A stretch of 25,162 nt of DNA, taken from NCBI GenBank assembly GCA_002269645.1, contig NIVC01005137.1, positions 1 to 25,162 on the forward strand. Direction: 5' to 3'. This stretch comes from Macrostomum lignano. Lineage: Eukaryota. Below, in pieces: positions 2,683 to 25,162 of this stretch. A model generated the notes under the pieces. It searched no databases, was not told the DNA's origin, and saw nothing but the letters and a program-made list of their open reading frames with translations. Both the position numbers and the translations under genes were made by a program. Within the stretch, counting starts at the first letter, position 1, and every line of letters begins with the position of its first letter.

Positions 2683-3252
2683 ATGAGGGCTCTTTGCGTC
2701 TGCCTGCTGGTGTCTCTGGCCCTGTCCGTAAACTAAATTAACTCCGCCGTGACGCCTCGCAGTGCGGCAGACAACAGGCAAGAGGTTCGGATCTGATCTA
2801 CAGCGTTGCAAATGGCGATTATTTGTTCGTCAGCAAGGACAAGAGGGGCAGCGCGCCGGACAATTTGGTCAAGAGAACATCGTTGAGAACATCGGCGAGT
2901 CGAGCAAATCGGTTCCTCCTGCAGCACGGCGGCAATAACCGCTACGGCATCTACAACCCGAGCTCCGATGGCTCACGTGGTCCTGCCTCACCCAAGAGAA
3001 GCCGGGGCTGAGCGCATCAAGCAGAGGAACGAGTTCGTATTTGAGAGCGTCGGGCACAATCGCTCTGTGATATTCAACCCCAGCTATGGTAAATATCTGT
3101 TTGCGTCAAAAAGCCTTCACAACGTAGACAATAACCTTGTGCTCAGTCATAAATCTTGGTTCGATTGCCGCAACAAGTTTCACTCTGATTCTGCACGACG
3201 AGCCTTGTTCCTAGTCTGTATAAATGGAGAGAACTTCATTAAGTGCACCTGA
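2683..3252 (+). pseudogene. Disabled gene for a secreted protein of about 190-200 aa with a three-fold internal repeat (beta-trefoil/ricin-B-like fold suspected)
   Basis: The signal peptide MRALCVCLLVSLALSVN is followed by an in-frame TAA (2734-2736). A 5-bp duplication GATCT-GATCT (2790-2799) shifts the frame; removing it gives QEVRIYSVANGDYLFVS. A second shift near 2967 joins the track ORFs 2823-3011 and 2968-3252. Internal repeats: IYSVANGDYLFVS vs IFNPSYGKYLFAS, and NRFLLQHGGNNRYGIYNPS vs NEFVFESVGHNRSVIFNPS. Confidence 0.7.
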
Positions 3253-3674
3253 GCTCTCGCACCTGATCAGAGACCGAACGATGCATCTGATAACTTTCAG
3301 ATTGGGAATTTTCAGATTGGGTTAAATCCAGGACTAATTAATGACTTAATGCTTAACCATTTTTTGATACCTACATGTAAGCAAGTTAAGATGACTACTT
3401 TGATGCAGTGTAATGTAGATTGATCTGATACGTTGTCTACGGTATAGAGCTTCTCGATGAATTTAGGCTCAATTAGTTCGCTTTTATACCGAGTTGTTGC
3501 AAACAGAACGAAGATTTGCATGGATTACACGTCTGTATTGGCTCCTGCTGCTTTTCCAGAATATACATGTAGGGAACAGCTTTTTGTCTATGGGGAGTCT
3601 GGAGAGCAGCAGAAATGCTTGAGTTCGATGTCTGATTCAAATAGAACCAAATGTTGGTCTTAACCTACCTGTTT

Positions 3675-4026
3675 CTGATTCAGGAAAAAAGAACACAGCT
3701 ACTATATACGTTATAATTAGGCAGTTTCCGTTTTTTATTCACAAAAATCAACAAAATCTTACCTTTAGAACTCTTGTGGATCGCAACTGGCTTTACTATG
3801 ACCAGGTGGCAATGCTGACAAATGTTTAATTTGTTTCCTGAAACTTCGTTTGGCTTGTACAAGCTGGCCCTTGGCGGGTTTGGCCCATAGATTTTTGGGC
3901 ACTGGAAGCAATATATAGATATGTCTATGCTTCCTAGGCCGAAACGCGGCACAAATACCTTATTGTAACATATGTAATTTGTCAATGCAACAACAGCATC
4001 AGCAACAACAATAACAACAACAACAT
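3675..4026 (-). other. Possible cryptic or degraded multi-exon gene for a secreted Cys-containing protein
   Basis: ATG at 4026 opens MLLLLLLLLMLLLH (a TTG repeat), then TGA. There is a GT-AG 57-nt intron (3958-3902, ending TTGCTTCCAG), a 139-nt exon (3901-3763) ending AAAG|GTAAGA, and an 88-nt intron (3762-3675) ending TTTTTTCCTGAATCAG. GC boxes lie upstream (about 4142 and 4178). No intact ORF without indel correction. Confidence 0.25.
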
Positions 4027-4031
4027 CACAA
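3988..4031. repeat. Imperfect (CAA)n microsatellite
   Basis: CAACAACAGCATCAGCAACAACAATAACAACAACAACATCACAA. Confidence 0.8.
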
Positions 4032-4485
4032 TATACTGTCAGGTCTTATAAAATACGCGTCTCTGGACTGGGTCGTCTAGATCTTTAGTCTTGTAGTCCT
4101 CCGTAAATACAGAAGACAACGACAGGCAACACGAGCCGTTTGGGCGGACAGATAAGAGGGCTCTGGGTGTGCAGGACGGGCGGGTGTGCAGAAGAAGAAT
4201 TGCATTCAATCAAAGATTAATTGAAATCTTGAACCTAGAATTTACATGCGCATCTACGAGATACATTAATTTCGTAGTTTTTGTTTACTACTACTTTCTA
4301 GTCAGTAGGCGGGGATCGCTTAAAACGGTAAAATGAATGCTGGTTAAATACCACAATACAATTAAACTGCTCAGTCAGCCAGCACGCGGAGGCGAAATAA
4401 TATAGACACTACTTAGTCATCGTATGATTATTCACGGTTATCAACCCATCCCATCCAAAAACCTGATTTGATCTGTCTATCTATC

Positions 4486-4656
4486 CTAGCTTCAGCAAAA
4501 AAATTATGCTATTTACGTTTCTTGCTTTGAGAACTATTGTTCTTTTTAGTAAATATACCATCGAATCCTTCTAGCTTCAGCGATAAAAATATTTTATGCA
4601 ATTTACGTTTCTTGCTGTGAGAACTATTGTTCTTTTTAGTAAATATACCATCGAAT
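4486..4656. repeat. About 85-bp tandem duplication
   Basis: CTAGCTTCAGC...ATTTACGTTTCTTGCT(T/G)TGAGAACTATTGTTCTTTTTAGTAAATATACCATCGAAT at 4486-4566 and 4571-4656. Confidence 0.9.
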
Positions 4657-4896
4657 TGTACAATTTTGCAGACTATTAGCAGAGCCTTTCAAACGGATGC
4701 TTGAAAAAAATAGTCGACGATATAGAATCAGAATCAACGATACACTATTTGTGGGATAATGTACAAATTAAATCCAGAATGAATTTCTTCGATAAAACTT
4801 GGTCTTTGCCTAAAACTAGCAAAAATAAAGTTGCAAGCCACTGAACGCGCAAAGGAGTTGCTAGAATTGTAGCAGTCGATTACGAAGCTATTAGTA

Positions 4897-4902
4897 TTTA
4901 TT
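4897..4902 (-). terminator. Candidate polyadenylation signal AATAAA for the 5006-5214 gene
   Basis: TTTATT on the + strand, about 100 nt downstream of the corrected stop codon. Confidence 0.4.
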
Positions 4903-5005
4903 TTGGTACCAAATTAATTGACAATTAAAACCATAAAACTGAAATGGATGATGCATCGTTCAGCCTCTGATCAGGTGAGAGCCGCCCGGGTCAGTCAGCG
5001 AGCGC

Positions 5006-5214
5006 TCAGGTGCAGCGGTACATGCGGGGATTGTAGCAGTGCGTGCCGCACTTGCGATGACGACCGGGCACAGGAAGTAGCCATTGATGCAAGTGTGCGT
5101 CCTCGGGCTGTAGCAGGTGCCGCCGCAGGACCGGTCGCCGCCACCGCAGGCGTCAGTAGAGTTCACAGACACGGCCAGCAGAACCAGCAGGCAGACGCAG
5201 AGAGCCTTCATCAT
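5006..5214 (-). CDS. Small secreted cationic 8-Cys peptide, CBM52 (PF10645 Carb_bind)-like, with a 1-bp frameshift at about 5061
   Basis: The signal peptide is MMKALCVCLLVLLAVSVNSTDA. Restoring one G (GTC GT CAT to GTC GGT CAT) gives the mature peptide CGGGDRSCGGTCYSPRTHTCINGYFLCPVGHRKCGTHCYNPRMYRCT-stop (TGA at 5008-5006), a two-fold repeat C-xx-G-x-R-x-CG-xx-CY-x-PR-xxx-C. Codons are C/G-ending, and TATA, CCAAT and polyA motifs are appropriately placed. The track's 84-aa version is the frameshifted read-through. Confidence 0.85.
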
Positions 5215-5354
5215 CTTGAGTAGAGGTGTTGATGCGGTGAGTAGTGGAATGCTGCAGAACCGATGCGGACTTTTATTCTGTAGGGCCTCTGGTCGGTGCT
5301 TGCTGAGTTGCTAAGTGGCTGCTGGCTTGCACCGTCGCCTCAGTCCGCCGCTTG

Positions 5355-5453
5355 TATTTATAGACTGCGGCCAGAGGCTTGGGGTTGAAGGGTGGAGTGG
5401 GGTGGGGGCCATCAGAACACGAAAAACCCCCTCTGTGAAACCCGCCAGCCAAT
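5355..5453 (-). promoter_or_regulatory. Core promoter of the 5214 gene (TATAAATA, CACCC box, CCAAT)
   Basis: TATAAATA on the - strand at 5362-5355, about 140 nt upstream of the ATG; CCACCCCACTCCA at about 5405-5393; CCAAT at 5449-5453. Confidence 0.55.
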
Positions 5454-5788
5454 CAAATTTTGTTTTAAAGACAAGAGCAGACTGTGGTGAGGGGGGCGGG
5501 GTGCTGGGTCAGCTAGTAATTGATCCAAGCCCCTGGTGTGTGTGCACATCTACAAATACTATAGTAAAAGCTTATCTTGGTTGGTTAGTACAGCCCTGGC
5601 TTAAGCGTTGACGATCGCGTTTTCATTCTCTGCTAAGTAAATATTGATAGTTTGCAAACGTAAACAAGCTCGTCATTCTTGCATTCAGCTCAATATAATT
5701 ATAGCTGATACTCGTATTACGCAATAGTCACCCAAGTTAGGCTTCGCAAATTCAGAATGCTCTATATGATAATAAATAAATGCAGCTA

Positions 5789-6055
5789 CACTCAGCAACA
5801 TCGAAAAGTCGCCATCACAGAAGATTCCTTTTTGAGAGGGCGGCAGGTAAAGTCTCTCAATCTTTGCGAGTGACGCAACTCAGCTACGCCGCGGCAGACT
5901 TGAGTTGAGGAATGAAGTGGGGGGGGGAGCGGTGTGCGAGGGTTGGACGGATCAAAGCTACCCCGATCAGTTTTCTCGTCTATTTTATTTCATAATAGTC
6001 CAAGAGAAATTGCTCACTGGCGCATAGAGTGGCGACTTTTCAACGTTGCTGAGTA
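5789..6055. mobile_element. 267-bp MITE with TA target-site duplication (Tc1/mariner- or animal CACTA/CMC-like)
   Basis: TIRs CACTCAGCAACATCGAAAAGTCGCCA (5789-5814) and TGGCGACTTTTCAACGTTGCTGAGTA (6030-6055) match at 23/26. TA lies at 5787-5788 and 6056-6057. Confidence 0.75.
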
Positions 6056-6227
6056 TACATGTATATTTAAACCCAACGACAGGACAAGATTGTTGCCAAT
6101 TTCAAAGATCAAAGTCCAGCGCAGATGGTATATGCAGCTGATGCTCAGCTCGTTCTTCATCAAAACATTTCTCATCGGATTCACTGGATTCTTCGTTACT
6201 TATTTTATAAGATGAATATAGTGGAAC

Positions 6228-6471
6228 GAAGGGATCGGGGTGATGGGATGAAGGGGATCAGAGTCAGTGGATGAAGGAATCAGAGTCCGTGGATGAAGGA
6301 ATCAGGGTCCGTGGATGAAGGGATCGGGGTGATAGGATGAAGGGGATTAGAGTCAGTGGATGAAGGAATCAGGGTCCGTGGATGAAGGGATCAGGGTCCG
6401 TGGATGAAGGGATCAGGGTCCGTGGATGAAGGGATCAGGGTCCGTGGATGAAGGGATCAAGGTCAGCGGGT
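6228..6471. repeat. 22-bp minisatellite (GAAGGGATCAGGGTCCGTGGAT) x11
   Basis: Eleven units of 22-23 bp. Two variant units recur as a pair 89 bp apart (6228 and 6317). Confidence 0.92.
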
Positions 6472-7346: not shown

Positions 7347-10300
7347 ATGATGCTGTGTTGTTTGAGCTGTAGAGATGATGCTGTGAGCTGTAGAGATGAT
7401 GCTGTGTTGTTTGAGCAGTAGAGATGATGCTGTGTTGTTTGAGCTGTAGAGATGATGCTGTGAGCTGTAGAGATGATGCTGTGTTGTTTGAGCAGTAGAG
7501 ATGATGCTGTGTTGTTTGAGCAGTAGAGATGATGCTGTGTTGTTTGAGCAGTAGAGATGATGTTGTGAGCTGTAGAGATGATGCTGTGAGCTGTAGAGAT
7601 GATGCTGTGAGCTGTAAAGATGATGCTGTGTTGTTTGAGCTGTAGAGATGATGCTGTTTGAGCTGTAGAGATGATGCTGTGTTGTTTGAGCTGTAGAGAT
7701 GATGCTGTTTGAGCTGTAGAGATGATGTTGTGTGAGCTGTAGAGATGATGCTGTGAGCTGTAGAGATGATGCTGTGTTGTTTGAGCAGTAGAGATGATGC
7801 TGTGTTGTTTGAGCAGTAAAGATGATGCTGTTTGAGCTGTAGAGATGTTGCTGTTTGAGCTGTAGAGATGATGCTGTGTTGTTTGAGCAGTAGAGATGAT
7901 GCTGTGTTGTTTGAGCAGTAGAGATGATGCTGTTTGAGCTGTAGAGATGATGCTGTGAGCTGTAGAGATGACGCTGTGAGCTGTAAAGATGATGCTGTGT
8001 TGTTTGAGCAGTAGAGATGATGCTGTTTGAGCTGTAGAGATGATGTTGTGAGCTGTAGAGATGATGCTGTGCTGTTTGAGCAGTAGAGATGATGCTGTGT
8101 GAGCTGTAGAGATGATGCTGTGAGCTGTAGAGATGACGCTGTGAGCTGTAGAGATTATGCTGTGAGCTGTAGAGATGATGCTGTGAGCTGTAGAGATGAT
8201 GCTGTTTAAGCTGTAGAGATGACGCTGTGAGCTGTATAGATGATGCAGTGAGAGCAGTAGAGATGATGCTGTGTTGTTTGAGCTGTAGAGATGATGCTGT
8301 TTGAGCTGTAGAGATGATGTTGTGAGCTGTAGAGATGATGCTGTGTTGTTTGAGCAGTAGAGATGATGCTGTTTGAGCTGTAGAGATGATGCTGTGAGCT
8401 GTAGAGATGACGCTGTGAGCTGTAGAGATGACGCTGTGAGCTGTAGAGATGATGCTGTGAGCTGTAGAGATGATGCTGTTTAAGCTGTAGAGACGACGCT
8501 GTGAGCTGTAGAGATGACGCTGTGAGCTGTAGAGATGATGCTGTGAGCTGTAGAGATGATGCTGTTTAAGCTGTAGAGATGACGCTGTGAGCTGTAGAGA
8601 TGACGCTGTGAGCTGTAGAGATGATGCTGTGAGCTGTAGAGATGACGCTGTGAGCTGTATAGATGATGCAGTGAAAGCTGTAGAGATGATGCTGTGTTGT
8701 TTGAGCTGTAAAGATGATGCTGTTTGAGCTGTAGAGATGATGTTGTGAGCTGTAGAGATGATGCTGTGTTGTTTGAGCTGTAGAGATGATGCTGTGTGAG
8801 CTGTAGAGATGATGCTGTGAGCTGTAGAGATGACGCTGTGAGCTGTAGAGATGATGCTGTGAGCTGTAGAGATGACGCTGTGAGCTGTATAGATGATGCA
8901 GTGAGAGCAGTAGAGATGATGCTGTGTTGTTTGAGCTGTAGAGATGATGCTGTGAGAGCTGTAGAGATGATGCTGCGTGAGCTGTAGAGATGATGCTGTG
9001 AGCTGTAGAAATAATGCTGTGAGCTGTAGAGATGATGCTGTGTTGTTTGAGCTGTAGAGATGATGCTGTGAGCTGTATTGATGATGCTGTAAGAACTGTA
9101 GAGATGATGTTGTGAGCTGTAAAGATGATGTTGTGTTGTGTGAGCTGTAGAGATGATGCTGTGAGCTGTAGAGATGATGCTGTGAGCTGTAGAGATGATG
9201 CCGTGAGCTGTATAGATGATGCAGTGAAAGCTGTAGAGATGATGCTGTGAGAGCTGTAGAGATGATGCTGTTTGAGCTGTAGAGATGACGCTGTGAGCTG
9301 TATAGATGATGCAGTGAGAGCTGCAGAGATAATGATGTGAGCTGTAGAGATGATGCTGTTTGAGCTGTAGAGATGATGCTGTGAGCTGTAGAGATGATGC
9401 TGTGAGCTGTAAAGATGATGCTGTGTTGTTTGAGCTGTAGAGATGATGCTGTTTGAGCTGTAGAGATGATGTTGTGAGCTGTAGAGATGATGCTGTGTTG
9501 TTTGAGCAGTAGAGATGATGCTGTTTGAGCTGTAGAGATGATGTTGTGAGCTGTAGAGATGATGCTGTGCTGTTTGAGCAGTAGAGATGATGCTGTGTGA
9601 GCTGTAGAGATGATGCTGTGAGCTGTAGAGATGACGCTGTGAGCTGTAGAGATGATGCTGTGAGCTGTAGAGATGATGCTGTGAGCTGTAGAGATGATGC
9701 TGTTTAAGCTGTAGAGATGACGCTGTGAGCTGTATAGATGATGCAGTGAGAGCAGTAGAGATGATGCTGTGTTGTTTGAGCTGTAGAGATGATGCTGTTT
9801 GAGCTGTAGAGATGATGTTGTGAGCTGTAGAGATGATGCTGTGTTGTTTGAGCAGTAGAGATGATGCTGTTTGAGCTGTAGAGATGATGCTGTGAGCTGT
9901 AGAGATGACGCTGTGAGCTGTAGAGATGACGCTGTGAGCTGTAGAGATGATGCTGTGAGCTGTAGAGATGATGCTGTTTAAGCTGTAGAGATGACGCTGT
10001 GAGCTGTAGAGATGACGCTGTGAGCTGTAGAGATGATGCTGTGAGCTGTAGAGATGATGCTGTTTAAGCTGTAGAGATGACGCTGTGAGCTGTAGAGATG
10101 ACGCTGTGAGCTGTAGAGATGATGCTGTGAGCAGTAGAGATGATGCTGTGTTGTTTGAGCAGTAAAGATGATGCTGTTTGAGCTGTAGAGATGATGCTGT
10201 TTGAGCTGTAGAGATGATGCTGTGTTGTTTGAGCAGTAGAGATGATGCTGTGTTGTTTGAGCAGTAGAGATGATGCTGTTTGAGCTGTAGAGATGATGCT

Positions 10301-13300
10301 GTGAGCTGTAGAGATGACGCTGTGAGCTGTAAAGATGATGCTGTGTTGTTTGAGCAGTAGAGATGATGCTGTTTGAGCTGTAGAGATGATGTTGTGAGCT
10401 GTAGAGATGATGCTGTGCTGTTTGAGCAGTAGAGATGATGCTGTGTGAGCTGTAGAGATGATGCTGTGAGCTGTAGAGATGACGCTGTGAGCTGTAGAGA
10501 TGATGCTGTGAGCTGTAGAGATGATGCTGTGAGCTGTAGAGATGATGCTGTTTAAGCTGTAGAGATGACGCTGTGAGCTGTATAGATGATGCAGTGAGAG
10601 CAGTAGAGATGATGCTGTGTTGTTTGAGCTGTAGAGATGATGCTGCGTGAGCTGTAGAGATGATGTTGTGAGCTGTAGAGATGATGCTGTGTTGTTTGAG
10701 CAGTAGAGATGATGCTGTTTGAGCTGTAGAGATGATGCTGTGAGCTGTAGAGATGACGCTGTGAGCTGTAGAGATGACGCTGTGAGCTGTAGAGATGATG
10801 CTGTGAGCTGTAGAGATGATGCTGTTTAAGCTGTAGAGACGACGCTGTGAGCTGTAGAGATGACGCTGTGAGCTGTAGAGATGATGCTGTGAGCTGTAGA
10901 GATGATGCTGTTTAAGCTGTAGAGATGACGCTGTGAGCTGTAGAGATGACGCTGTGAGCTGTAGAGATGATGCTGTGAGCTGTAGAGATGACGCTGTGAG
11001 CTGTATAGATGATGCAGTGAAAGCTGTAGAGATGATGCTGTGTTGTTTGAGCTGTAAAGATGATGCTGTTTGAGCTGTAGAGATGATGTTGTGAGCTGTA
11101 GAGATGATGCTGTGTTGTTTGAGCTGTAGAGATGATGCTGTGTGAGCTGTAGAGATGATGCTGTGAGCTGTAGAGATGACGCTGTGAGCTGTAGAGATGA
11201 TGCTGTGAGCTGTAGAGATGACGCTGTGAGCTGTATAGATGATGCAGTGAGAGCAGTAGAGATGATGCTGTGTTGTTTGAGCTGTAGAGATGATGCTGTG
11301 AGAGCTGTAGAGATGATGCTGCGTGAGCTGTAGAGATGATGCTGTGAGCTGTAGAAATAATGCTGTGAGCTGTAGAGATGATGCTGTGTTGTTTGAGCTG
11401 TAGAGATGATGCTGTGAGCTGTATTGATGATGCTGTAAGAACTGTAGAGATGATGTTGTGAGCTGTAAAGATGATGTTGTGTTGTGTGAGCTGTAGAGAT
11501 GATGCTGTGAGCTGTAGAGATGATGCTGTGAGCTGTAGAGATGATGCCGTGAGCTGTATAGATGATGCAGTGAAAGCTGTAGAGATGATGCTGTGAGAGC
11601 TGTAGAGATGATGCTGTTTGAGCTGTAGAGATGACGCTGTGAGCTGTATAGATGATGCAGTGAGAGCTGCAGAGATAATGATGTGAGCTGTAGAGATGAT
11701 GCTGTTTGAGCTGTAGAGATGATGCTGTGAGCTGTAGAGATGATGCTGTGAGCTGTAAAGATGATGCTGTGTTGTTTGAGCTGTAGAGATGATGCTGTTT
11801 GAGCTGTAGAGATGATGTTGTGAGCTGTAGAGATGATGCTGTGTTGTTTGAGCAGTAGAGATGATGCTGTTTGAGCTGTAGAGATGATGTTGTGAGCTGT
11901 AGAGATGATGCTGTGCTGTTTGAGCAGTAGAGATGATGCTGTGTGAGCTGTAGAGATGATGCTGTGAGCTGTAGAGATGACGCTGTGAGCTGTAGAAATG
12001 ATGCTGTGAGCTGTAGAGATGATGCTGTGAGCTGTAGAGATGATGCTGTTTAAGCTGTAGAGATGACGCTGTGAGCTGTATAGATGATGCAGTGAGAGCA
12101 GTAGAGATGATGCTGTGTTGTTGAGCTGTAGAGATGATGCTGTTTGAGCTGTAGAGATGATGTTGTGAGCTGTAGAGATGATGCTGTGTTGTTTGAGCAG
12201 TAGAGATGATGCTGTTTGAGCTGTAGAGATGATGCTGTGAGCTGTAGAGATGACGCTGTGAGCTGTAGAGATGACGCTGTGAGCTGTAGAGATGATGCTG
12301 TGAGCTGTAGAGATGATGCTGTTTAAGCTGTAGAGATGACGCTGTGAGCTGTAGAGATGACGCTGTGAGCTGTAGAGATGATGCTGTGAGCTGTAGAGAT
12401 GATGCTGTTTAAGCTGTAGAGATGACGCTGTGAGCTGTAGAGATGACGCTGTGAGCTGTAGAGATGATGCTGTGAGCTGTAGAGATGACGCTGTGAGCTG
12501 TATAGATGATGCAGTGAAAGCTGTAGAGATGATGCTGTGTTGTTTGAGCTGTAGAGATGATGCTGTGTTGTTTGAGCTGTAGAGATGATGCTGTTTGAGC
12601 TGTAGAGATGATGTTGTGAGCTGTAGAGATGATGCTGTGTTGTTTGAGCTGTAGAGATGATGCTGTGTGAGCTGTAGAGATGATGCTGTGAGCTGTAGAG
12701 ATGACGCTGTGAGCTGTAGAGATGATGCTGTGAGCTGTAGAGATGACGCTGTGAGCTGTATAGATGATGCAGTGAGAGCAGTAGAGATGATGCTGTGTTG
12801 TTTGAGCTGTAGAGATGATGCTGTGAGAGCTGTAGAGATGATGCTGCGTGAGCTGTAGAGATGATGCTGTGAGCTGTAGAAATAATGCTGTGAGCTGTAG
12901 AGATGATGCTGTGTTGTTTGAGCTGTAGAGATGATGCTGTGAGCTGTATTGATGATGCTGTAAGAACTGTAGAGATGATGTTGTGAGCTGTAAAGATGAT
13001 GTTGTGTTGTGTGAGCTGTAGAGATGATGCTGTGAGCTGTAGAGATGATGCTGTGAGCTGTAGAGATGATGCCGTGAGCTGTATAGATGATGCAGTGAAA
13101 GCTGTAGAGATGATGCTGTGAGAGCTGTAGAGATGATGCTGTTTGAGCTGTAGAGATGACGCTGTGAGCTGTATAGATGATGCAGTGAGAGCTGCAGAGA
13201 TAATGATGTGAGCTGTAGAGATGATGCTGTTTGAGCTGTAGAGATGATGCTGTGAGCTGTAGAGATGATGCTGTGAGCTGTAAAGATGATGCTGTGTTGT

Positions 13301-16300
13301 TTGAGCAGTAGAGATGATGCTGTTTGAGCTGTAGAGATGATGTTGTGAGCTGTAGAGATGATGCTGTGCTGTTTGAGCAGTAGAGATGATGCTGTGTGAG
13401 CTGTAGAGATGATGCTGTGAGCTGTAGAGATGACGCTGTGAGCTGTAGAGATGATGCTGTGAGCTGTAGAGATGATGCTGTGAGCTGTAGAGATGATGCT
13501 GTTTAAGCTGTAGAGATGACGCTGTGAGCTGTATAGATGATGCAGTGAGAGCAGTAGAGATGATGCTGTGTTGTTTGAGCTGTAGAGATGATGCTGTTTG
13601 AGCTGTAGAGATGATGTTGTGAGCTGTAGAGATGATGCTGTGTTGTTTGAGCAGTAGAGATGATGCTGTTTGAGCTGTAGAGATGATGCTGTGAGCTGTA
13701 GAGATGACGCTGTGAGCTGTAGAGATGACGCTGTGAGCTGTAGAGATGATGCTGTGAGCTGTAGAGATGATGCTGTTTAAGCTGTAGAGATGACGCTGTG
13801 AGCTGTAGAGATGACGCTGTGAGCTGTAGAGATGATGCTGTGAGCTGTAGAGATGATGCTGTTTAAGCTGTAGAGATGACGCTGTGAGCTGTAGAGATGA
13901 CGCTGTGAGCTGCAGAGATGATGCTGTGAGCTGTAGAGATGACGCTGTGAGCTGTATAGATGATGCAGTGAAAGCTGTAGAGATGATGCTGTGTTGTTTG
14001 AGCTGTAGAGATGATGCTGTTTGAGCTGTAGAGATGATGTTGTGAGCTGTAGAGATGATGCTGTGTTGTTTGAGCTGTAGAGATGATGCTGTGTGAGCTG
14101 TAGAGATGATGCTGTGAGCTGTAGAGATGACGCTGTGAGCTGTAGAGATGATGCTGTGAGCTGTAGAGATGACGCTGTGAGCTGTAGAGATGATGCTGTG
14201 AGCTGTAGAGATGACGCTGTGAGCTGTATAGATGATGCAGTGAAAGCTGTAGAGATGATGCTGTGTTGTTTGAGCAGTAGAGATGATGCTGTTTGAGCTG
14301 TAGAGATGATGCTGTGAGCTGTAGAGATGACGCTGTGAGCTGTAGAGATGACGCTGTGAGCTGTAGAGATGATGCTGTGAGCTGTAGAGATGATGCTGTT
14401 TAAGCTGTAGAGATGACGCTGTGAGCTGTAGAGATGACGCTGTGAGCTGTAGAGATGATGCTGTGAGCTGTAGAGATGATGCTGTTTAAGCTGTAGAGAT
14501 GACGCTGTGAGCTGTAGAGATGACGCTGTGAGCTGTAGAGATGATGCTGTGAGCAGTAGAGATGATGCTGTGTTGTTTGAGCAGTAAGATGATGCTGTTT
14601 GAGCTGTAGAGATGATGCTGTTTGAGCTGTAGAGATGATGCTGTGTTGTTTGAGCAGTAGAGATGATGCTGTGTTGTTTGAGCAGTAGAGATGATGCTGT
14701 TTGAGCTGTAGAGATGATGCTGTGAGCTGTAGAGATGACGCTGTGAGCTGTAAGATGATGCTGTGTTGTTTGAGCAGTAGAGATGATGCTGTTTGAGCTG
14801 TAGAGATGATGTTGTGAGCTGTAGAGATGATGCTGTGCTGTTTGAGCAGTAGAGATGATGCTGTGTGAGCTGTAGAGATGATGCTGTGAGCTGTAGAGAT
14901 GACGCTGTGAGCTGTAGAGATGATGCTGTGAGCTGTAGAGATGATGCTGTGAGCTGTAGAGATGATGCTGTTTAAGCTGTAGAGATGACGCTGTGAGCTG
15001 TATAGATGATGCAGTGAGAGCAGTAGAGATGATGCTGTGTTGTTTGAGCTGTAGAGATGATGCTGTTTGAGCTGTAGAGATGATGTTGTGAGCTGTAGAG
15101 ATGATGCTGTGTTGTTTGAGCAGTAGAGATGATGCTGTTTGAGCTGTAGAGATGATGCTGTGAGCTGTAGAGATGACGCTGTGAGCTGTAGAGATGACGC
15201 TGTGAGCTGTAGAGATGATGCTGTGAGCTGTAGAGATGATGCTGTTTAAGCTGTAGAGACGACGCTGTGAGCTGTAGAGATGACGCTGTGAGCTGTAGAG
15301 ATGATGCTGTGAGCTGTAGAGATGATGCTGTTTAAGCTGTAGAGATGACGCTGTGAGCTGTAGAGATGACGCTGTGAGCTGTAGAGATGATGCTGTGAGC
15401 TGTAGAGATGACGCTGTGAGCTGTATAGATGATGCAGTGAAAGCTGTAGAGATGATGCTGTGTTGTTTGAGCTGTAAAGATGATGCTGTTTGAGCTGTAG
15501 AGATGATGTTGTGAGCTGTAGAGATGATGCTGTGTTGTTTGAGCTGTAGAGATGATGCTGTGTGAGCTGTAGAGATGATGCTGTGAGCTGTAGAGATGAC
15601 GCTGTGAGCTGTAGAGATGATGCTGTGAGCTGTAGAGATGACGCTGTGAGCTGTATAGATGATGCAGTGAGAGCAGTAGAGATGATGCTGTGTTGTTTGA
15701 GCTGTAGAGATGATGCTGTGAGAGCTGTAGAGATGATGCTGCGTGAGCTGTAGAGATGATGCTGTGAGCTGTAGAATAATGCTGTGAGCTGTAGAGATGA
15801 TGCTGTGTTGTTTGAGCTGTAGAGATGATGCTGTGAGCTGTATTGATGATGCTGTAAGAACTGTAGAGATGATGTTGTGAGCTGTAAAGATGATGTTGTG
15901 TTGTGTGAGCTGTAGAGATGATGCTGTGAGCTGTAGAGATGATGCTGTGAGCTGTAGAGATGATGCCGTGAGCTGTATAGATGATGCAGTGAAAGCTGTA
16001 GAGATGATGCTGTGAGAGCTGTAGAGATGATGCTGTTTGAGCTGTAGAGATGACGCTGTGAGCTGTATAGATGATGCAGTGAGAGCTGCAGAGATAATGA
16101 TGTGAGCTGTAGAGATGATGCTGTTTGAGCTGTAGAGATGATGCTGTGAGCTGTAGAGATGATGCTGTGAGCTGTAAAGATGATGCTGTGTTGTTTGAGC
16201 TGTAGAGATGATGCTGTTTGAGCTGTAGAGATGATGTTGTGAGCTGTAGAGATGATGCTGTGTTGTTTGAGCAGTAGAGATGATGCTGTTTGAGCTGTAG

Positions 16301-19300
16301 AGATGATGTTGTGAGCTGTAGAGATGATGCTGTGCTGTTTGAGCAGTAGAGATGATGCTGTGTGAGCTGTAGAGATGATGCTGTGAGCTGTAGAGATGAC
16401 GCTGTGAGCTGTAGAGATGATGCTGTGAGCTGTAGAGATGATGCTGTGAGCTGTAGAGATGATGCTGTTTAAGCTGTAGAGATGACGCTGTGAGCTGTAT
16501 AGATGATGCAGTGAGAGCAGTAGAGATGATGCTGTGTTGTTTGAGCTGTAGAGATGATGCTGTTTGAGCTGTAGAGATGATGTTGTGAGCTGTAGAGATG
16601 ATGCTGTGTTGTTTGAGCAGTAGAGATGATGCTGTTTGAGCTGTAGAGATGATGCTGTGAGCTGTAGAGATGACGCTGTGAGCTGTAGAGATGACGCTGT
16701 GAGCTGTAGAGATGATGCTGTGAGCTGTAGAGATGATGCTGTTTAAGCTGTAGAGATGACGCTGTGAGCTGTAGAGATGACGCTGTGAGCTGTAGAGATG
16801 ATGCTGTGAGCTGTAGAGATGATGCTGTTTAAGCTGTAGAGATGACGCTGTGAGCTGTAGAGATGACGCTGTGAGCTGTAGAGATGATGCTGTGAGCAGT
16901 AGAGATGATGCTGTGTTGTTTGAGCAGTAAAGATGATGCTGTTTGAGCTGTAGAGATGATGCTGTTTGAGCTGTAGAGATGATGCTGTGTTGTTTGAGCA
17001 GTAGAGATGATGCTGTGTTGTTTGAGCAGTAGAGATGATGCTGTTTGAGCTGTAGAGATGATGCTGTGAGCTGTAGAGATGACGCTGTGAGCTGTAAGAT
17101 GATGCTGTGTTGTTTGAGCAGTAGAGATGATGCTGTTTGAGCTGTAGAGATGATGTTGTGAGCTGTAGAGATGATGCTGTGCTGTTTGAGCAGTAGAGAT
17201 GATGCTGTGTGAGCTGTAGAGATGATGCTGTGAGCTGTAGAGATGACGCTGTGAGCTGTAGAGATGATGCTGTGAGCTGTAGAGATGATGCTGTGAGCTG
17301 TAGAGATGATGCTGTTTAAGCTGTAGAGATGACGCTGTGAGCTGTATAGATGATGCAGTGAGAGCAGTAGAGATGATGCTGTGTTGTTTGAGCTGTAGAG
17401 ATGATGCTGTTTGAGCTGTAGAGATGATGTTGTGAGCTGTAGAGATGATGCTGTGTTGTTTGAGCAGTAGAGATGATGCTGTTTGAGCTGTAGAGATGAT
17501 GCTGTGAGCTGTAGAGATGACGCTGTGAGCTGTAGAGATGACGCTGTGAGCTGTAGAGATGATGCTGTGAGCTGTAGAGATGATGCTGTTTAAGCTGTAG
17601 AGACGACGCTGTGAGCTGTAGAGATGACGCTGTGAGCTGTAGAGATGATGCTGTGAGCTGTAGAGATGATGCTGTGAGCTGTAGAGATGACGCTGTGAGC
17701 TGTAGAGATGACGCTGTGAGCTGTAGAGATGATGCTGTGAGCTGTAGAGATGACGCTGTGAGCTGTATAGATGATGCAGTGAAAGCTGTAGAGATGATGC
17801 TGTGTTGTTTGAGCTGTAAGATGATGCTGTTTGAGCTGTAGAGATGATGTTGTGAGCTGTAGAGATGATGCTGTGTTGTTTGAGCTGTAGAGATGATGCT
17901 GTGTGAGCTGTAGAGATGATGCTGTGAGCTGTAGAGATGACGCTGTGAGCTGTAGAGATGATGCTGTGAGCTGTAGAGATGACGCTGTGAGCTGTATAGA
18001 TGATGCAGTGAGAGCAGTAGAGATGATGCTGTGTTGTTTGAGCTGTAGAGATGATGCTGTGAGAGCTGTAGAGATGATGCTGCGTGAGCTGTAGAGATGA
18101 TGCTGTGAGCTGTAGAAATAATGCTGTGAGCTGTAGAGATGATGCTGTGTTGTTTGAGCTGTAGAGATGATGCTGTGAGCTGTATTGATGATGCTGTAAG
18201 AACTGTAGAGATGATGTTGTGAGCTGTAAGATGATGTTGTGTTGTGTGAGCTGTAGAGATGATGCTGTGAGCTGTAGAGATGATGCTGTGAGCTGTAGAG
18301 ATGATGCGTGAGCTGTATAGATGATGCAGTGAAAGCTGTAGAGATGATGCTGTGAGAGCTGTAGAGATGATGCTGTTTGAGCTGTAGAGATGACGCTGTG
18401 AGCTGTATAGATGATGCAGTGAGAGCTGCAGAGATAATGATGTGAGCTGTAGAGATGATGCTGTTTGAGCTGTAGAGATGATGCTGTGAGCTGTAGAGAT
18501 GATGCTGTGAGCTGTAAAGATGATGCTGTGTTGTTTGAGCTGTAGAGATGATGCTGTTTGAGCTGTAGAGATGATGTTGTGAGCTGTAGAGATGATGCTG
18601 TGTTGTTTGAGCAGTAGAGATGATGCTGTTTGAGCTGTAGAGATGATGTTGTGAGCTGTAGAGATGATGCTGTGCTGTTTGAGCAGTAGAGATGATGCTG
18701 TGTGAGCTGTAGAGATGATGCTGTGAGCTGTAGAGATGACGCTGTGAGCTGTAGAAATGATGCTGTGAGCTGTAGAGATGATGCTGTGAGCTGTAGAGAT
18801 GATGCTGTTTAAGCTGTAGAGATGACGCTGTGAGCTGTATAGATGATGCAGTGAGAGCAGTAGAGATGATGCTGTGTTGTTTGAGCTGTAGAGATGATGC
18901 TGTTTGAGCTGTAGAGATGATGTTGTGAGCTGTAGAGATGATGCTGTGTTGTTTGAGCAGTAGAGATGATGCTGTTTGAGCTGTAGAGATGATGCTGTGA
19001 GCTGTAGAGATGACGCTGTGAGCTGTAGAGATGACGCTGTGAGCTGTAGAGATGATGCTGTGAGCTGTAGAGATGATGCTGTTTAAGCTGTAGAGATGAC
19101 GCTGTGAGCTGTAGAGATGACGCTGTGAGCTGTAGAGATGATGCTGTGAGCTGTAGAGATGATGCTGTTTAAGCTGTAGAGATAACGCTGTGAGCTGTAG
19201 AGATGACGCTGTGAGCTGTAGAGATGATGCTGTGAGCTGTAGAGATGACGCTGTGAGCTGTATAGATGATGCAGTGAAAGCTGTAGAGATGATGCTGTGT

Positions 19301-22300
19301 TGTTTGAGCTGTAGAGATGATGCTGTGTTGTTTGAGCTGTAGAGATGATGCTGTTTGAGCTGTAGAGATGATGTTGTGAGCTGTAGAGATGATGCTGTGT
19401 TGTTTGAGCTGTAGAGATGATGCTGTGTGAGCTGTAGAGATGATGCTGTGAGCTGTAGAGATGACGCTGTGAGCTGTAGAGATGATGCTGTGAGCTGTAG
19501 AGATGACGCTGTGAGCTGTATAGATGATGCAGTGAGAGCAGTAGAGATGATGCTGTGTTGTTTGAGCTGTAGAGATGATGCTGTGAGAGCTGTAGAGATG
19601 ATGCTGCGTGAGCTGTAGAGATGATGCTGTGAGCTGTAGAAATAATGCTGTGAGCTGTAGAGATGATGCTGTGTTGTTTGAGCTGTAGAGATGATGCTGT
19701 GAGCTGTATTGATGATGCTGTAAGAACTGTAGAGATGATGTTGTGAGCTGTAAAGATGATGTTGTGTTGTGTGAGCTGTAGAGATGATGCTGTGAGCTGT
19801 AGAGATGATGCTGTGAGCTGTAGAGATGATGCGTGAGCTGTATAGATGATGCAGTGAAAGCTGTAGAGATGATGCTGTGAGAGCTGTAGAGATGATGCTG
19901 TTTGAGCTGTAGAGATGACGCTGTGAGCTGTATAGATGATGCAGTGAGAGCTGCAGAGATAATGATGTGAGCTGTAGAGATGATGCTGTTTGAGCTGTAG
20001 AGATGATGCTGTGAGCTGTAGAGATGATGCTGTGAGCTGTAAAGATGATGCTGTGTTGTTTGAGCAGTAGAGATGATGCTGTTTGAGCTGTAGAGATGAT
20101 GTTGTGAGCTGTAGAGATGATGCTGTGCTGTTTGAGCAGTAGAGATGATGCTGTGTGAGCTGTAGAGATGATGCTGTGAGCTGTAGAGATGACGCTGTGA
20201 GCTGTAGAGATGATGCTGTGAGCTGTAGAGATGATGCTGTGAGCTGTAGAGATGATGCTGTTTAAGCTGTAGAGATGACGCTGTGAGCTGTATAGATGAT
20301 GCAGTGAGAGCAGTAGAGATGATGCTGTGTTGTTTGAGCTGTAGAGATGATGCTGTTTGAGCTGTAGAGATGATGTTGTGAGCTGTAGAGATGATGCTGT
20401 GTTGTTTGAGCAGTAGAGATGATGCTGTTTGAGCTGTAGAGATGATGCTGTGAGCTGTAGAGATGACGCTGTGAGCTGTAGAGATGACGCTGTGAGCTGT
20501 AGAGATGATGCTGTGAGCTGTAGAGATGATGCTGTTTAAGCTGTAGAGATGACGCTGTGAGCTGTAGAGATGACGCTGTGAGCTGTAGAGATGATGCTGT
20601 GAGCTGTAGAGATGATGCTGTTTAAGCTGTAGAGATGACGCTGTGAGCTGTAGAGATGACGCTGTGAGCTGCAGAGATGATGCTGTGAGCTGTAGAGATG
20701 ACGCTGTGAGCTGTATAGATGATGCAGTGAAAGCTGTAGAGATGATGCTGTGTTGTTTGAGCTGTAGAGATGATGCTGTTTGAGCTGTAGAGATGATGTT
20801 GTGAGCTGTAGAGATGATGCTGTGTTGTTTGAGCTGTAGAGATGATGCTGTGTGAGCTGTAGAGATGATGCTGTGAGCTGTAGAGATGACGCTGTGAGCT
20901 GTAGAGATGATGCTGTGAGCTGTAGAGATGACGCTGTGAGCTGTAGAGATGATGCTGTGAGCTGTAGAGATGACGCTGTGAGCTGTATAGATGATGCAGT
21001 GAAAGCTGTAGAGATGATGCTGTGTTGTTTGAGCTGTAGAGATGATGCTGTTTGAGCTGTAGAGATGATGTTGTGAGCTGTAGAGATGATGCTGTGTTGT
21101 TTGAGCTGTAGAGATGATGCTGTGTGAGCTGTAGAGATGATGCTGTGAGCTGTAGAGATGACGCTGTGAGCTGTAGAGATGATGCTGTGAGCTGTAGAGA
21201 TGACGCTGTGAGCTGTATAGATGATGCAGTGAGAGCAGTAGAGATGATGCTGTGTTGTTTGAGCTGTAGAGATGATGCTGTGAGAGCTGTAGAGATGATG
21301 CTGCGTGAGCTGTAGAGATGATGCTGTGAGCTGTAGAAATAATGCTGTGAGCTGTAGAGATGATGCTGTGTTGTTTGAGCAGTAGAGATGATGCTGTGAG
21401 CTGTAGAGATGACGCTGTGAGCTGTAGAGATGATGCTGTGAGCTGTAGAGATGATGCTGTTTAAGCTGTAGAGATGACGCTGTGAGCTGTAGAGATGACG
21501 CTGTGAGCTGTAGAGATGATGCTGTGAGCTGTAGAGATGACGCTGTGAGCTGTATAGATGATGCAGTGAAAGCTGTAGAGATGATGCTGTGTTGTTTGAG
21601 CTGTAAAGATGATGCTGTTTGAGCTGTAGAGATGATGTTGTGAGCTGTAGAGATGATGCTGTGTTGTTTGAGCTGTAGAGATGATGCTGTGTGAGCTGTA
21701 GAGATGATGCTGTGAGCTGTAGAGATGACGCTGTGAGCTGTAGAGATGATGCTGTGAGCTGTAGAGATGACGCTGTGAGCTGTATAGATGATGCAGTGAG
21801 AGCAGTAGAGATGATGCTGTGTTGTTTGAGCTGTAGAGATGATGCTGTGAGAGCTGTAGAGATGATGCTGCGTGAGCTGTAGAGATGATGCTGTGAGCTG
21901 TAGAAATAATGCTGTGAGCTGTAGAGATGATGCTGTGTTGTTTGAGCTGTAGAGATGATGCTGTGAGCTGTATTGATGATGCTGTAAGAACTGTAGAGAT
22001 GATGTTGTGAGCTGTAGAGATGATGTTGTGTTGTGTGAGCTGTAGAGATGATGCTGTGAGCTGTAGAGATGATGCTGTGAGCTGTAGAGATGATGCCGTG
22101 AGCTGTATAGATGATGCAGTGAAAGCTGTAGAGATGATGCTGTGAGAGCTGTAGAGATGATGCTGTTTGAGCTGTAGAGATGACGCTGTGAGCTGTATAG
22201 ATGATGCAGTGAGAGCTGTAGAGATAATGATGTGAGCTGTAGAGATGATGCTGTGAGCTGTAGAGATGATGCTGTGAGCTGTAGAGATGATGCTGTGTTG

Positions 22301-22449
22301 TTTGAGCAGTAGAGATGAGGCTGTGAGAGCTGTAGAGATGATGCTGTGAGCTGTAGAGATGATGCTGTGAGAGCTGTAGAGATGATGCTGCGTGAGCTGT
22401 AGAGATGATTCTGTGAGCTGTAGAGATGATGCTGTTAGAGCTGTAGAGA
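7347..22449. repeat. 15.1-kb satellite array; core monomer GAGCTGTAGAGATGATGCTGT (21 bp) with 23- and 28-bp variants and nested higher-order repeats
   Basis: A continuous head-to-tail array with variants ending GT, TT or GTTGTTT and an ATGACG variant. The diagnostic GTATTGATG recurs at 9075, 11421, 12946, 15840, 18182, 19706 and 21970. Confidence 0.99.
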
Positions 22450-23079
22450 CTTCTCCAATCGCACACATTTCGGAGATAGAGTGAGATGCAGATTGGAGTT
22501 GGTCTGAAGTAAATTTCGCACCTACAAATGCTAGGCAGCCGCTGACAAGGCTCGATGCCAGCCTCTGCATGGCAAACCCAATTCTGCATGGGTTTAAGCA
22601 CCGCTTAAAGAATGCAAGAAGTCGTGGCGGCGCGAGTTGCTTGCTGACACAGAAGGAACAAGAACGAGCAGTTTTTTATTAACTGAAGCGATAGACTCGG
22701 CCGCAGGGGACGAGGAAGGAAAAGTGCGTCATCGGTCGAACAAGAGTGAAATAAATTAAGGTCTGCGAATGTGGTGTAATTCTGCTTCAAAATAAGCACA
22801 GATCTGCAGTAGCAACAAGAAGAGATCGGACACAAAAAGCACAAAACAACGAATCTTCTGCTGCGTCACTCTGAAGATTGGAACAACAGTCGACAAAAGC
22901 GAAGCTCAGAGGAATTCCAGCTTCAGCCGCTCCTGACTCAGCTGGTCTATCAGGTGATAAGCGGCGATTTTGGGCGATTTTAAAGTTTGCAGTCTTTGGG
23001 TAACATCAAGTTTACGACAGCTGGTACTGATTTAGTGAGTGACGAATGTCTGTTGCCATAGCAATTAGCCCAGAGGCTG

Positions 23080-24846
23080 TCAGACCCCGGCATCCTGGAC
23101 GACGCGGGCTCCGTCGCGATGCTCGCCGCCAAGCCGCTGGTCCCCGTCCTCCTCCGCGTCTCTGGCCTTCCCGCCAGCTCCGCGCCGCGCGCGACAAAAG
23201 CCGAACAGCCGGCGCTGCAGTCGGACGTGCAGGTTGGGATTGGCCAGGATGTAGATGAAGAAGTTCATGGCCGAGTCCAGGATAGTCATGATGTTCGCCA
23301 GCTTCATCAGGCAGGCGCTGGCCGGACCGCTGGGATCCAGGATGACGAAGGCGGCGTCCAGCTTGGACAGGAAGGTGGGGAACTCGAACAGGAAGAACAC
23401 AATGGACAGCGCCACCACCGTGCGGTTGGCCGGCGAGATGGAGAAGCGGCGACGGCGCTGGCGGCGAAGGCCAGACGCGATGCTCTCGGAGTCGCTGACA
23501 CGAGGCTGCGCCGGAGGCGGGCGCGGCGGCGGCGGCGGCGGAGACCTGCAGCTGGCGCTGGCGCCTCCTGTCGCGCGGATGACGGCCCAGGAGATGACGG
23601 CGGAGGAGGCGGAGACGATGGATGATGGGGCCGCCGGACTGCAGCAGGAACAGCAGCACGGTCAGGTAGGCCACCGAGTAGGCGGGGCTGAGCAGCAGCG
23701 GCGAGGGCAGCTGGTCGCGAACTGGCCCGAGTCCAGGCAGAACACGTAGACGAACTCGAAGGCCCGCCGCGCAGGCCCCAGGAAGAAGGCGAGGCCGGTG
23801 GCCAGGGGAAACACCGGGCAGTTGAGCCGGCGGCTCCAGGTGTGGTACAGGCGGTGCGCGATGCCACGGCGGCCAGGCGCAGCAGGGCGATGAACACCAC
23901 CGTCCAGTTGCGGAGGCACTGCGACCAGCGACCAGCGGCACGCTGAGGCTCATCAGCACGGCCAGGAAAGCGCGCCAAGCCGGATGAGGGCACCTGGCGC
24001 GGTGCGTGGTTAGTGACATGTACTTTACGTTGCGCATGCTCTAGGCATTAGAAAGTGTTCATATCGAACTTTTGCTCTTCAATCGCATCCGAAGCTACGC
24101 AACGATAGGCGGATTTTGCATGATAGGCTTCAACAGTTCATGTACCGATATATGTTGCACAGTGCAGTTTTGCAGCTCTATGGTAGATAATTCTAAAGTA
24201 AGGTGGCTTTATTGAATGGCCAATGCTCTACATGCAGTGCTAAGTCAGTACTCTCTGGTTCTCAGCCAATGTCCTGTATTGAGGAAAATCCACTCTCCTC
24301 AAGGCTGAGCTGCAATTTTCGCATTTTATTCATTTTCCTAAGGCCCGGCCTCCCATATCATGGATGAAAAACTGCTGATACGTGTCTGGAACCATGCGTT
24401 TGGAAGTGACTTTTCAATTTCCCAGAAGACAACCCAAGCTAAGCATAATAATTTAGTAATTCTTCACACCTGAAGCCGCTGCGTGAGCAGCAGCAGGTAG
24501 AGGAAGAAGTGCAGGAACAGCGCCAGGTTGAAGGCGATCTCCACGGCGGCCAGGCGGAGGCAGCAGCCGGAGTTTTCGGCGCAGTCCGCGTCCGCGGCCC
24601 CGTTGCCGACGGCGCCCCCGCCGACCCTGGCGCGCAGCTGTCGATGGCACAGGGCGAGGCCCCAGGCTTGACCAGCACGTTGACGACGGCCAGGCCGGGG
24701 GTGGAGAAGTTGTACAGCCGCTCCAGGTTGTGCAGAGGCTGGCGCTGGCTCAGGTTGGCGCAGGAGACGCCGCGGGACCACAGGTCCTCTGCGTCCGAGG
24801 AGTTGTCGACCAGCAGCAGCCACTGGCCCAGCGATAGGTCTGACAT
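23080..24846 (-). CDS. Two-exon class A (rhodopsin-like) GPCR, FMRFamide-receptor/srw-like orphan, about 430 aa, interrupted by about 6 frameshifts (sequencing error or young pseudogene)
   Basis: Exon 1 is 24846-24470 (GCCATG start) and exon 2 is 23993-23080. Seven TM segments can be stitched across frames: PGLAVVNVLV..LALC; CLRLAAVEIAFNLALFLHFFLYLLLL; AFLAVLMSLSVPLVAWSQCLRNWTVVFIALLRLAAV; FPLATGLAFFLG..RAFEF; AYSVAYLTVLLFLLQSGGPIIIV; NRTVVALSIVFFLFEFPTFL; LANIMTILDSAMNFFIYILANPNL. Strong GC3 bias and no stop in the stitched frames. Confidence 0.85.
23994..24469 (-). other. 476-nt spliceosomal intron of the GPCR
   Basis: Donor TTCAG|GTGTGA at 24469, branch point CACTAAC at 24015-24009, acceptor CCAG|G at 23995-23994. 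The intron is AT-richer than the exons. Confidence 0.75.
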
Positions 24847-25162
24847 GGCTTTGGAGTGCTTGGCGGTAGAGAATCCACTTTGTCTGCCTGCGATCTCAGC
24901 AGCAGCTCAGACTCGCAGCTCCCGTTTTTTTTCGCTACGGATGCCGCCCACCTGGCGCTGACAGCCGGGGATTGGCGGATCGGCCGCGGCCAACGGAAGC
25001 CGGACCTGCAGCTGCTTGCGCTCGATTGTTTTTCCCACCGGCAGAGGCAACAGCAATTTTGCTCAGTTTCATTTGATGCCGTTGAAAGTAGCGCGTGAAT
25101 CTGGGATGCAGATTCTGCGAAAGCAATTTCCCCCAGCTTCTTTGAAACAAATTTGCTGTTTT

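Follow-up and report, generated by a model that had tools for sequence, protein, structure and literature searches.

A probable redundant copy of a flatworm gene for a secreted, single-domain CBM52 peptide

The C-terminal CBM of S. pombe Eng1, founder of the CBM52 family, is built from repeats of about 50 residues and is required for two things: targeting to the septum, and activity on insoluble beta-1,3-glucan (as stated in the passages of PMC3627985 that cite Martin-Cuadrado 2008). M. oryzae GBP consists of a signal peptide plus CBM52, and its authors conclude that it binds beta-1,3-glucan specifically (bioRxiv 10.1101/2025.07.03.663104). CBM52 is treated as fungal in the literature found, yet a flatworm and a tardigrade encode CBM52 in ordinary nuclear contexts.

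The flatworm locus lies in the Mlig_3_7 assembly of Macrostomum lignano (GCA_002269645.1). The window, meaning the whole stretch of DNA that was analysed, is the entire 25,162-bp contig NIVC01005137.1. Taken together, the evidence makes it likely that the locus is a redundant copy of Mlig018268.g1, a transcribed single-exon gene for a 69-aa secreted CBM52 precursor, with its frame broken by a likely consensus error and a product predicted to bind glucan.

Read on the minus strand from 5214 to 5006, the locus comprises a signal peptide and one four-cysteine unit, a frame break at 5061, and a second four-cysteine unit one frame over. Its features are these:

5355..5362, minus strand: TATA-box-like element TATAAATA, 141-148 nt upstream of the ATG; two matches occur in the window, against 0.36 expected.
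5149..5214, minus strand: start codon and signal peptide MMKALCVCLLVLLAVSVNSTDA (aa 1-22), with Lys3, a 12-residue hydrophobic core and small residues at -3/-1.
5071..5148, minus strand: first four-cysteine unit CGGGDRSCGGTCYSPRTHTCINGYFL (aa 23-48), matching PF10645 profile positions 1-23 and holding invariant Cys columns.
5060..5070, minus strand: opening residues of the second unit (CPV), with the site of the frameshift; the C at 5061 (plus strand) is CC in both intact copies.
5006..5059, minus strand: remainder of the second four-cysteine unit, HRKCGTHCYNPRMYRCT, with the stop codon TGA (5006-5008); it matches PF10645 positions 30-45 and is out of frame with the start codon here.
4897..4902, minus strand: AATAAA poly(A) signal, about 105 nt past the stop and the sole such hexamer on the minus strand between 4700 and 5010.

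As it stands, the open reading frame at 4960..5214 (minus strand) encodes MMKALCVCLLVLLAVSVNSTDACGGGDRSCGGTCYSPRTHTCINGYFLCPV, followed by a cysteine-poor tail that ends at 4960. The neighbouring frame, at 5006..5092 (minus strand), runs into GRHRKCGTHCYNPRMYRCT and the stop at 5006-5008. The two cysteine-rich halves are 50% identical to each other over 18 aa (E 1e-4 to 5e-4, tblastn against the window). With one C in place of CC at 5061, the Gly52 codon is reduced from GGT to G-T. A single exon makes up the gene, with 63% GC overall and 84% at third positions in the N-terminal part. Its signal peptide was called from sequence features, with a putative cleavage site; a promoter role for TATAAATA at 5355..5362 is presumed from its position.

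Intact versions of the gene are present on two other contigs of the same assembly, NIVC01001342.1 and NIVC01004792.1 (310 kb and 35 kb), in both cases 7-9 kb from the gene for RPLP0 (ribosomal protein P0). Their 69-aa product, P0001, is MMKALCVCLLVLLAVSVNSTDACGGGDRSCGGTCYSPRTHTCINGYFLCPVGHRKCGTHCYNPRMYRCT, entered in GenBank as 'hypothetical protein BOX15_Mlig018268g1'. Across 371 aligned bases, both UTRs included, the sole difference among the three copies is one G: the site reads GTCGGTCAT in the two other contigs and GTCGTCAT in the window. An earlier note on this DNA had proposed that a one-base repair yields a second four-cysteine copy, and the intact copies encode exactly the reconstruction it offered. 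The note had also entertained a deletion without any intact paralogue; intact paralogues lie on both contigs. Its expectation that automated annotation would miss the peptide proved mistaken: the intact copies are annotated as BOX15_Mlig018268g1, and P0001 is already tagged PF10645 in Pfam and UniRef, so that the NIVC01005137.1 copy alone was missed. UniRef gives P0001 the automatic name 'Endo-1,3(4)-beta-glucanase', a misleading over-transfer from CBM52, since the protein has no catalytic domain.

The GenBank annotation of Mlig_3_7 was built from a genome-guided RNA-seq transcriptome (PMC5730564), so the gene model Mlig018268.g1 implies transcript support. To judge by this annotation pipeline, the CBM52 gene is probably transcribed. 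The identifier Mlig018268 was not found in the full texts or supplements of the M. lignano papers searched, nor were expression data for it there.

Membership of the family was assessed with the PF10645 profile, whose gathering cut-off is 25 bits. P0001 passes this threshold with 36.3 bits and E 6.6e-9, its match covering positions 1-45 of the 49 in the profile. Searches with the broken frame used either its separate pieces or the pieces joined by XX, and the intact sequence was taken from the database protein; the window pieces score 21.5 and 23.8 bits alone, just below the cut-off, and 43.3 bits when joined. The CBM52 assignment of the flatworm peptide, which the earlier note had suggested and for which it had proposed this same Pfam comparison, is thus supported at the level of sequence. 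The unit has the pattern C-x6-CG-x2-CY-x-P-x4-C, and two units in tandem make one PF10645/CBM52 domain with an eight-cysteine framework. In an alignment of 43 family domains (A2), C10, C22, C29, C36, C40 and C48 are invariant, and C3, C14, Y15, Y41 and P43 are conserved in 90% or more of the sequences. The flatworm peptide has every conserved residue, including the invariant cysteines.

An exhaustive HMMER search of 1.84 billion representatives returned 187 proteins at E<=1e-3, of which 34 reach E<=1e-10; many have several repeats. The named relatives come from three fungi (Mycena latifolia; Piromyces finnis, with a GH16 domain; and Chytriomyces hyalinus), the tardigrade Hypsibius exemplaris (OWA54156.1), a EukProt protist, and the myxobacterium Nannocystis pusilla, whose protein is 73 aa long. 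The remaining relatives are metagenome or SRA contigs. Word-indexed homologue searches, with the N-terminal piece and with a 43-sequence profile, found only the gene itself, one SRA peptide and one Nannocystis protein. Galaxin-like repeats (PF24748, cut-off 28 bits) gave no match to P0001 at E<=0.01; sub-threshold matches to that profile are seen in the tardigrade relative (18.1 bits) and the Nannocystis relative (17.7 bits). A toxin reading was also considered, and was dropped when no toxin family matched.

Among the 148 matches listed, 31 are no longer than 130 aa, and in 22 of these 31 a signal-like N-terminus is followed by only two to four units. Secretion of the domain on its own is therefore a frequent arrangement in the family and no novelty. 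P0001 has the same simplicity: apart from its signal peptide it consists of one domain, and the glucanase catalytic domain (GH81 in Eng1, GH16 in Piromyces) is absent. Linkage to a catalytic domain is not obligatory in the CBM52 family, in that M. oryzae GBP and many of the matches are described as, or appear to be, stand-alone. The earlier suggestion of a stand-alone secreted peptide in an animal holds for P0001, and the intact contigs carry RPLP0 as well.

A second gene lies tail to tail with the CBM52 gene:

2683..3252, plus strand: convergent sister gene, with the same signal peptide, first residues, CING motif, ..CT* stop and 3' UTR.

The DNA of the signal-peptide region (5149..5214) is 86.8% identical to the start of the sister gene (E 1e-10, blastn). 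At the other end, 3256-3287 and 4950-4981 are 90.6% identical (E 7e-7, blastn), and the two genes read ..KCT*ALAPDQRPNDA and ..RCT*ALAD*PGRLSPDQRLNDA through the stop. That the stop is common to both genes had been noticed in the earlier note, and both the ..CT* ending and the 3' UTR match. Between these shared ends lie about 450 bp of unrelated internal sequence, and the middle of the sister gene is internally repeated: ..YLFVSKDK..NRFLLQHGGNNRYGIYNPS.. / ..NEFVFESVGHNRSVIFNPSYGKYLFASKS.. On all three contigs, the window and the two others (L002 and L003), the sister gene meets a stop just past the signal peptide unless a 35-nt GT..AG intron (2728-2762) is spliced. A second frame change falls near 2977-3024, and L003 has extra indels. 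For this second change no canonical GT..AG intron was found, the options being 22-25 nt or in the wrong phase. The sister gene has no homologues in the libraries searched, no Pfam family and no PDB match, which leaves a beta-trefoil or FGF-like identity, also considered, unsupported. It appears to derive from the CBM52 gene, by decay or as a chimera.

Whether the frame break in the CBM52 gene belongs to the genome or to the assembly was addressed by a three-way comparison of the window, L002 and L003 over 3580-6220, with these private events:

3580-6220, window: two substitutions (3964, 4211), four one-base run-length indels (4182, 4703, 5061, 5730) and one complex indel (4302-4311).
3580-6220, L002: four substitutions and no indels.
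3580-6220, L003: no substitutions and two one-base homopolymer indels.

Over 1-2597, nine single bases present in L003 are missing from the window, almost all of them from runs of one base. Mlig_3_7 is a Canu assembly of PacBio reads, with Pilon used for polishing (PMC5730564). Its duplicated blocks of at least 95% identity amount to 180 Mb, because the sequenced line carries extra chromosomes (PMC5730564). Short reads are not uniquely placeable in triplicated sequence, so residual long-read indels are to be expected. The error-like indel spectrum of the contig, together with the redundant PacBio/Canu assembly, favours a long-read consensus error as the source of the missing base at 5061; this is probably what happened, and a real pseudogene is the less likely case. 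Polishing would have been unable to mend such an error in a triplicated region; the missing base breaks the frame between the two units. The earlier note had treated the frameshift as a masking of interest in itself, but it has the appearance of a homopolymer consensus error, one of several that only NIVC01005137.1 carries.

Should the missing base be real, which is unlikely though worth weighing, this copy would be a null allele or pseudogene of very young age, belonging to a set of three that the recent whole-genome and chromosome duplication left in the DV1 line, with the other two functional. The duplicated, neopolyploid genome supplies the redundancy that such a loss would need, and gene decay does occur at the locus: the sister gene next door is broken in all three copies, more so in L003. 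Moreover, the private substitutions at 3964 and 4211 and the complex indel at 4302-4311 point to NIVC01005137.1 as a distinct molecule. The two substitutions look true and argue against plain double assembly, so the contig is not simply one molecule assembled twice. However, a single frameshift is the only sign of decay in this copy of the CBM52 gene, with no further change in 371 bp, UTRs included. In addition, private run-length indels stand to private substitutions as 4:2 in the window and 0:4 in L002, a bias typical of uncorrected long-read consensus. A consensus error is thus the preferred reading of the break at 5061.

A 15-kb tandem array fills 7363-22449, with a 21-bp unit (TGAGCTGTAGAGATGATGCTG) in about 660 copies, 82% matches and a strong GC skew of 0.57. 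The unit is stop-free in all three minus-strand frames and so produces open reading frames of up to 659 aa, in which the heptads QHHLYSS, SIISTAH and ASSLQLT alternate; the array resembles satellite DNA more than a repeat that codes for protein. The same 21-bp array, at about 87% identity, also adjoins the CBM52 gene in L002 and L003. The sister ATG is directly preceded, at 2574-2658, by a perfect 16-bp tandem repeat (AGGGAATGATGCTGAG) of 5.3 copies; its copy number is about five in the window, about two in L002 and about one in L003. The 16-bp repeat and the 21-bp satellite have the core GATGCTGAG in common. Other repeats are a 22-bp unit at 6228-6464 (10.7 copies, with a 44-bp length difference from L003) and a 90-bp unit at 4486-4656 (two copies). 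L002 carries an extra stretch of about 170 bp between the sister and CBM52 genes (about 11660-11830, minus strand; at window 3568/3569), absent from the window and L003, which fits L002 being the more diverged copy. On the minus strand, 23000-24850 is very GC-rich (67% over 23001-24000), with overlapping open reading frames in several frames. Within it, the translation of 23080-23418 resembles the final transmembrane helices of a receptor of the rhodopsin type (..SAMNFFIYILANP..), and several N-glycosylation-like sites lie in 24439-24846. No piece of these GPCR-like reading frames at 23.0-24.8 kb has a Pfam match, and the frames in 23000-24850 may be broken by the same kind of indels. The window contains no Rfam families or tRNAs that could be found.

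The mature peptide would have 47-49 aa, with eight cysteines, three histidines and a pI of 8.7. The eight cysteines and the charge of about +5 given in the earlier note agree with the intact product: net charge is +4 for DAC...CT, and +5 if cleavage follows TDA. With a charge of +4 the peptide ranks in the top ~3% among 130 domains of the family (mean -1.2, SD 3.0). This unusual charge may reflect a move to a different task, and would be compatible with an action like that of antimicrobial peptides or with attachment to anionic matrices. An AlphaFold2 model made from the 43-domain alignment has a mean pLDDT of 95.1 and a pTM of 0.68, with six short strands, three per unit. No relative was found in the PDB, either by sequence search or by Foldseek with the confident model (best E 3.5), and the CBM52 module appears to be without a solved structure. 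The conserved cysteines, eight in the mature peptide, suggest four disulfides in the modelled fold. Once secreted, the peptide would then fold into six short strands arranged as a compact all-beta knot.

Homology makes binding of beta-1,3-glucan, after secretion, the most likely activity of the flatworm peptide. It would in this resemble the Eng1 modules of S. pombe and the GBP that M. oryzae secretes, although glucan binding is reported for fungal members only, and these are at most about 45-55% identical to it over 49 aa. Chrysolaminarin is the beta-1,3-glucan store of diatoms. Candidate ligands would include the chrysolaminarin of diatoms eaten by the worm, or, in defence, fungal and oomycete walls; the positive charge of the peptide could add affinity for anionic surfaces. 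The antifungal, pattern-recognition and adhesive functions put forward in the earlier note are candidate roles at most. In culture, M. lignano is fed the diatom Nitzschia curvilineata (PMC7053086). A broader proposal, put forward here as a speculation that would be somewhat surprising if it held, is that animals such as flatworms and tardigrades own CBM52-type modules, and that one of these, cut down in Macrostomum to a lone, highly cationic secreted domain, is a beta-1,3-glucan immune effector against fungi and oomycetes, or a gut lectin for diatom chrysolaminarin. If true, this would define an animal class of glucan-recognition peptides unrelated to betaGRP/GNBP or Dectin-1.

It is doubtful that the peptide is instead mainly a cationic antimicrobial, acting on microbial membranes or anionic surfaces with the CBM52 scaffold as a disulfide knot only and no glucan binding. 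A small, secreted, disulfide-rich peptide with a charge of +4/+5, three histidines, a pI of 8.7 and a rank in the upper ~3% of the 130 family domains by charge would suit that role. Charge alone is weak evidence, however, and the family signature is kept, CG..CY.P occurring twice, with tyrosine aromatics typical of sugar-binding sites. Furthermore, no likeness to a known antimicrobial peptide family was seen in Pfam or the PDB. Glucan binding thus remains the preferred function for this peptide.

The earlier note also raised horizontal acquisition, for which no positive evidence emerged. That the Macrostomum lineage obtained the gene from a fungus or other microbe is very improbable: most named relatives are fungal (Mycena, Piromyces, Chytriomyces), CBM52 was met only from fungi in the literature found, and the gene has no intron, but relatives occur also in a EukProt protist and a myxobacterium, the best matches are just 45-55% identical, the signals are of animal type (TATA and AATAAA), and the GC content of 63% is close to the 65% of the GC-rich reading frame at 23080-23418 on the same contig. 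The tardigrade gene for OWA54156.1, with its 16 repeat stretches, weighs in the same direction. It lies on a 52.8-kb contig, adjoins a zf-C4 nuclear receptor and has an intron, and this neighbour and intron identify it as a genuine animal gene. A 49-aa domain dominated by cysteines holds little phylogenetic signal and gives no reliable tree. Transfer is neither needed nor shown, with the family present in fungi, protists, bacteria and another animal.

Together, these results recast the locus. The 'masked' peptide is not hidden; its gene is annotated and probably transcribed, and no biological meaning should be given to the frameshift in the absence of reads. The flatworm version is a minimal, unusually cationic, secreted single-domain member of a known module family, already in databases but uncharacterised. 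M. lignano is well established in the laboratory and can be made transgenic (PMC5730564, PMC7053086), which makes it convenient for studying the function of a stand-alone CBM52 in an animal. At 49 residues, the peptide also offers a convenient route to the first structure of a CBM52 module.

Secreted animal proteins that recognise microbial wall polysaccharides include the beta-1,3-glucan recognition proteins of invertebrates (betaGRP/GNBP, CBM39) and sugar-binding antimicrobial peptides of the hevein/tachycitin type, which are possible functional analogues of the flatworm peptide. They are unrelated to it in sequence and fold, and the Pfam search gave no match to them.

With S. pombe Eng1 the relation is closer: a common sequence family (36.3 bits, cut-off 25), the double C..CG..CY.P....C framework, and a domain of about 49 aa. 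Eng1 combines three repeats of about 50 aa with a GH81 catalytic domain, and its site of action is the fungal septum, as described in the cited passages of PMC3627985. The flatworm peptide, unlike Eng1, is a single domain alone behind a signal peptide, belongs to an animal and is strongly cationic. In general architecture it is like M. oryzae GBP, which as described has a secretion signal plus CBM52, with no catalytic domain mentioned; GBP, in contrast, is a fungal protein that acts on the fungus's own wall.

Small stand-alone proteins of CBM52 units, known from metagenomes and SRA data (P0026, P0044 and P0146 are examples), have the same layout of signal plus units as the flatworm peptide, whereas most of them are neutral or acidic. 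The best-scoring relative is the Hypsibius exemplaris protein BV898_18572 (OWA54156.1; E 1.5e-41, 41% identity per repeat), the product of an animal nuclear gene. This protein, which UniRef names 'Tenascin-X', differs in scale: it is 664 aa long and has 16 matched stretches of repeat, in place of the one domain that makes up the mature flatworm peptide.
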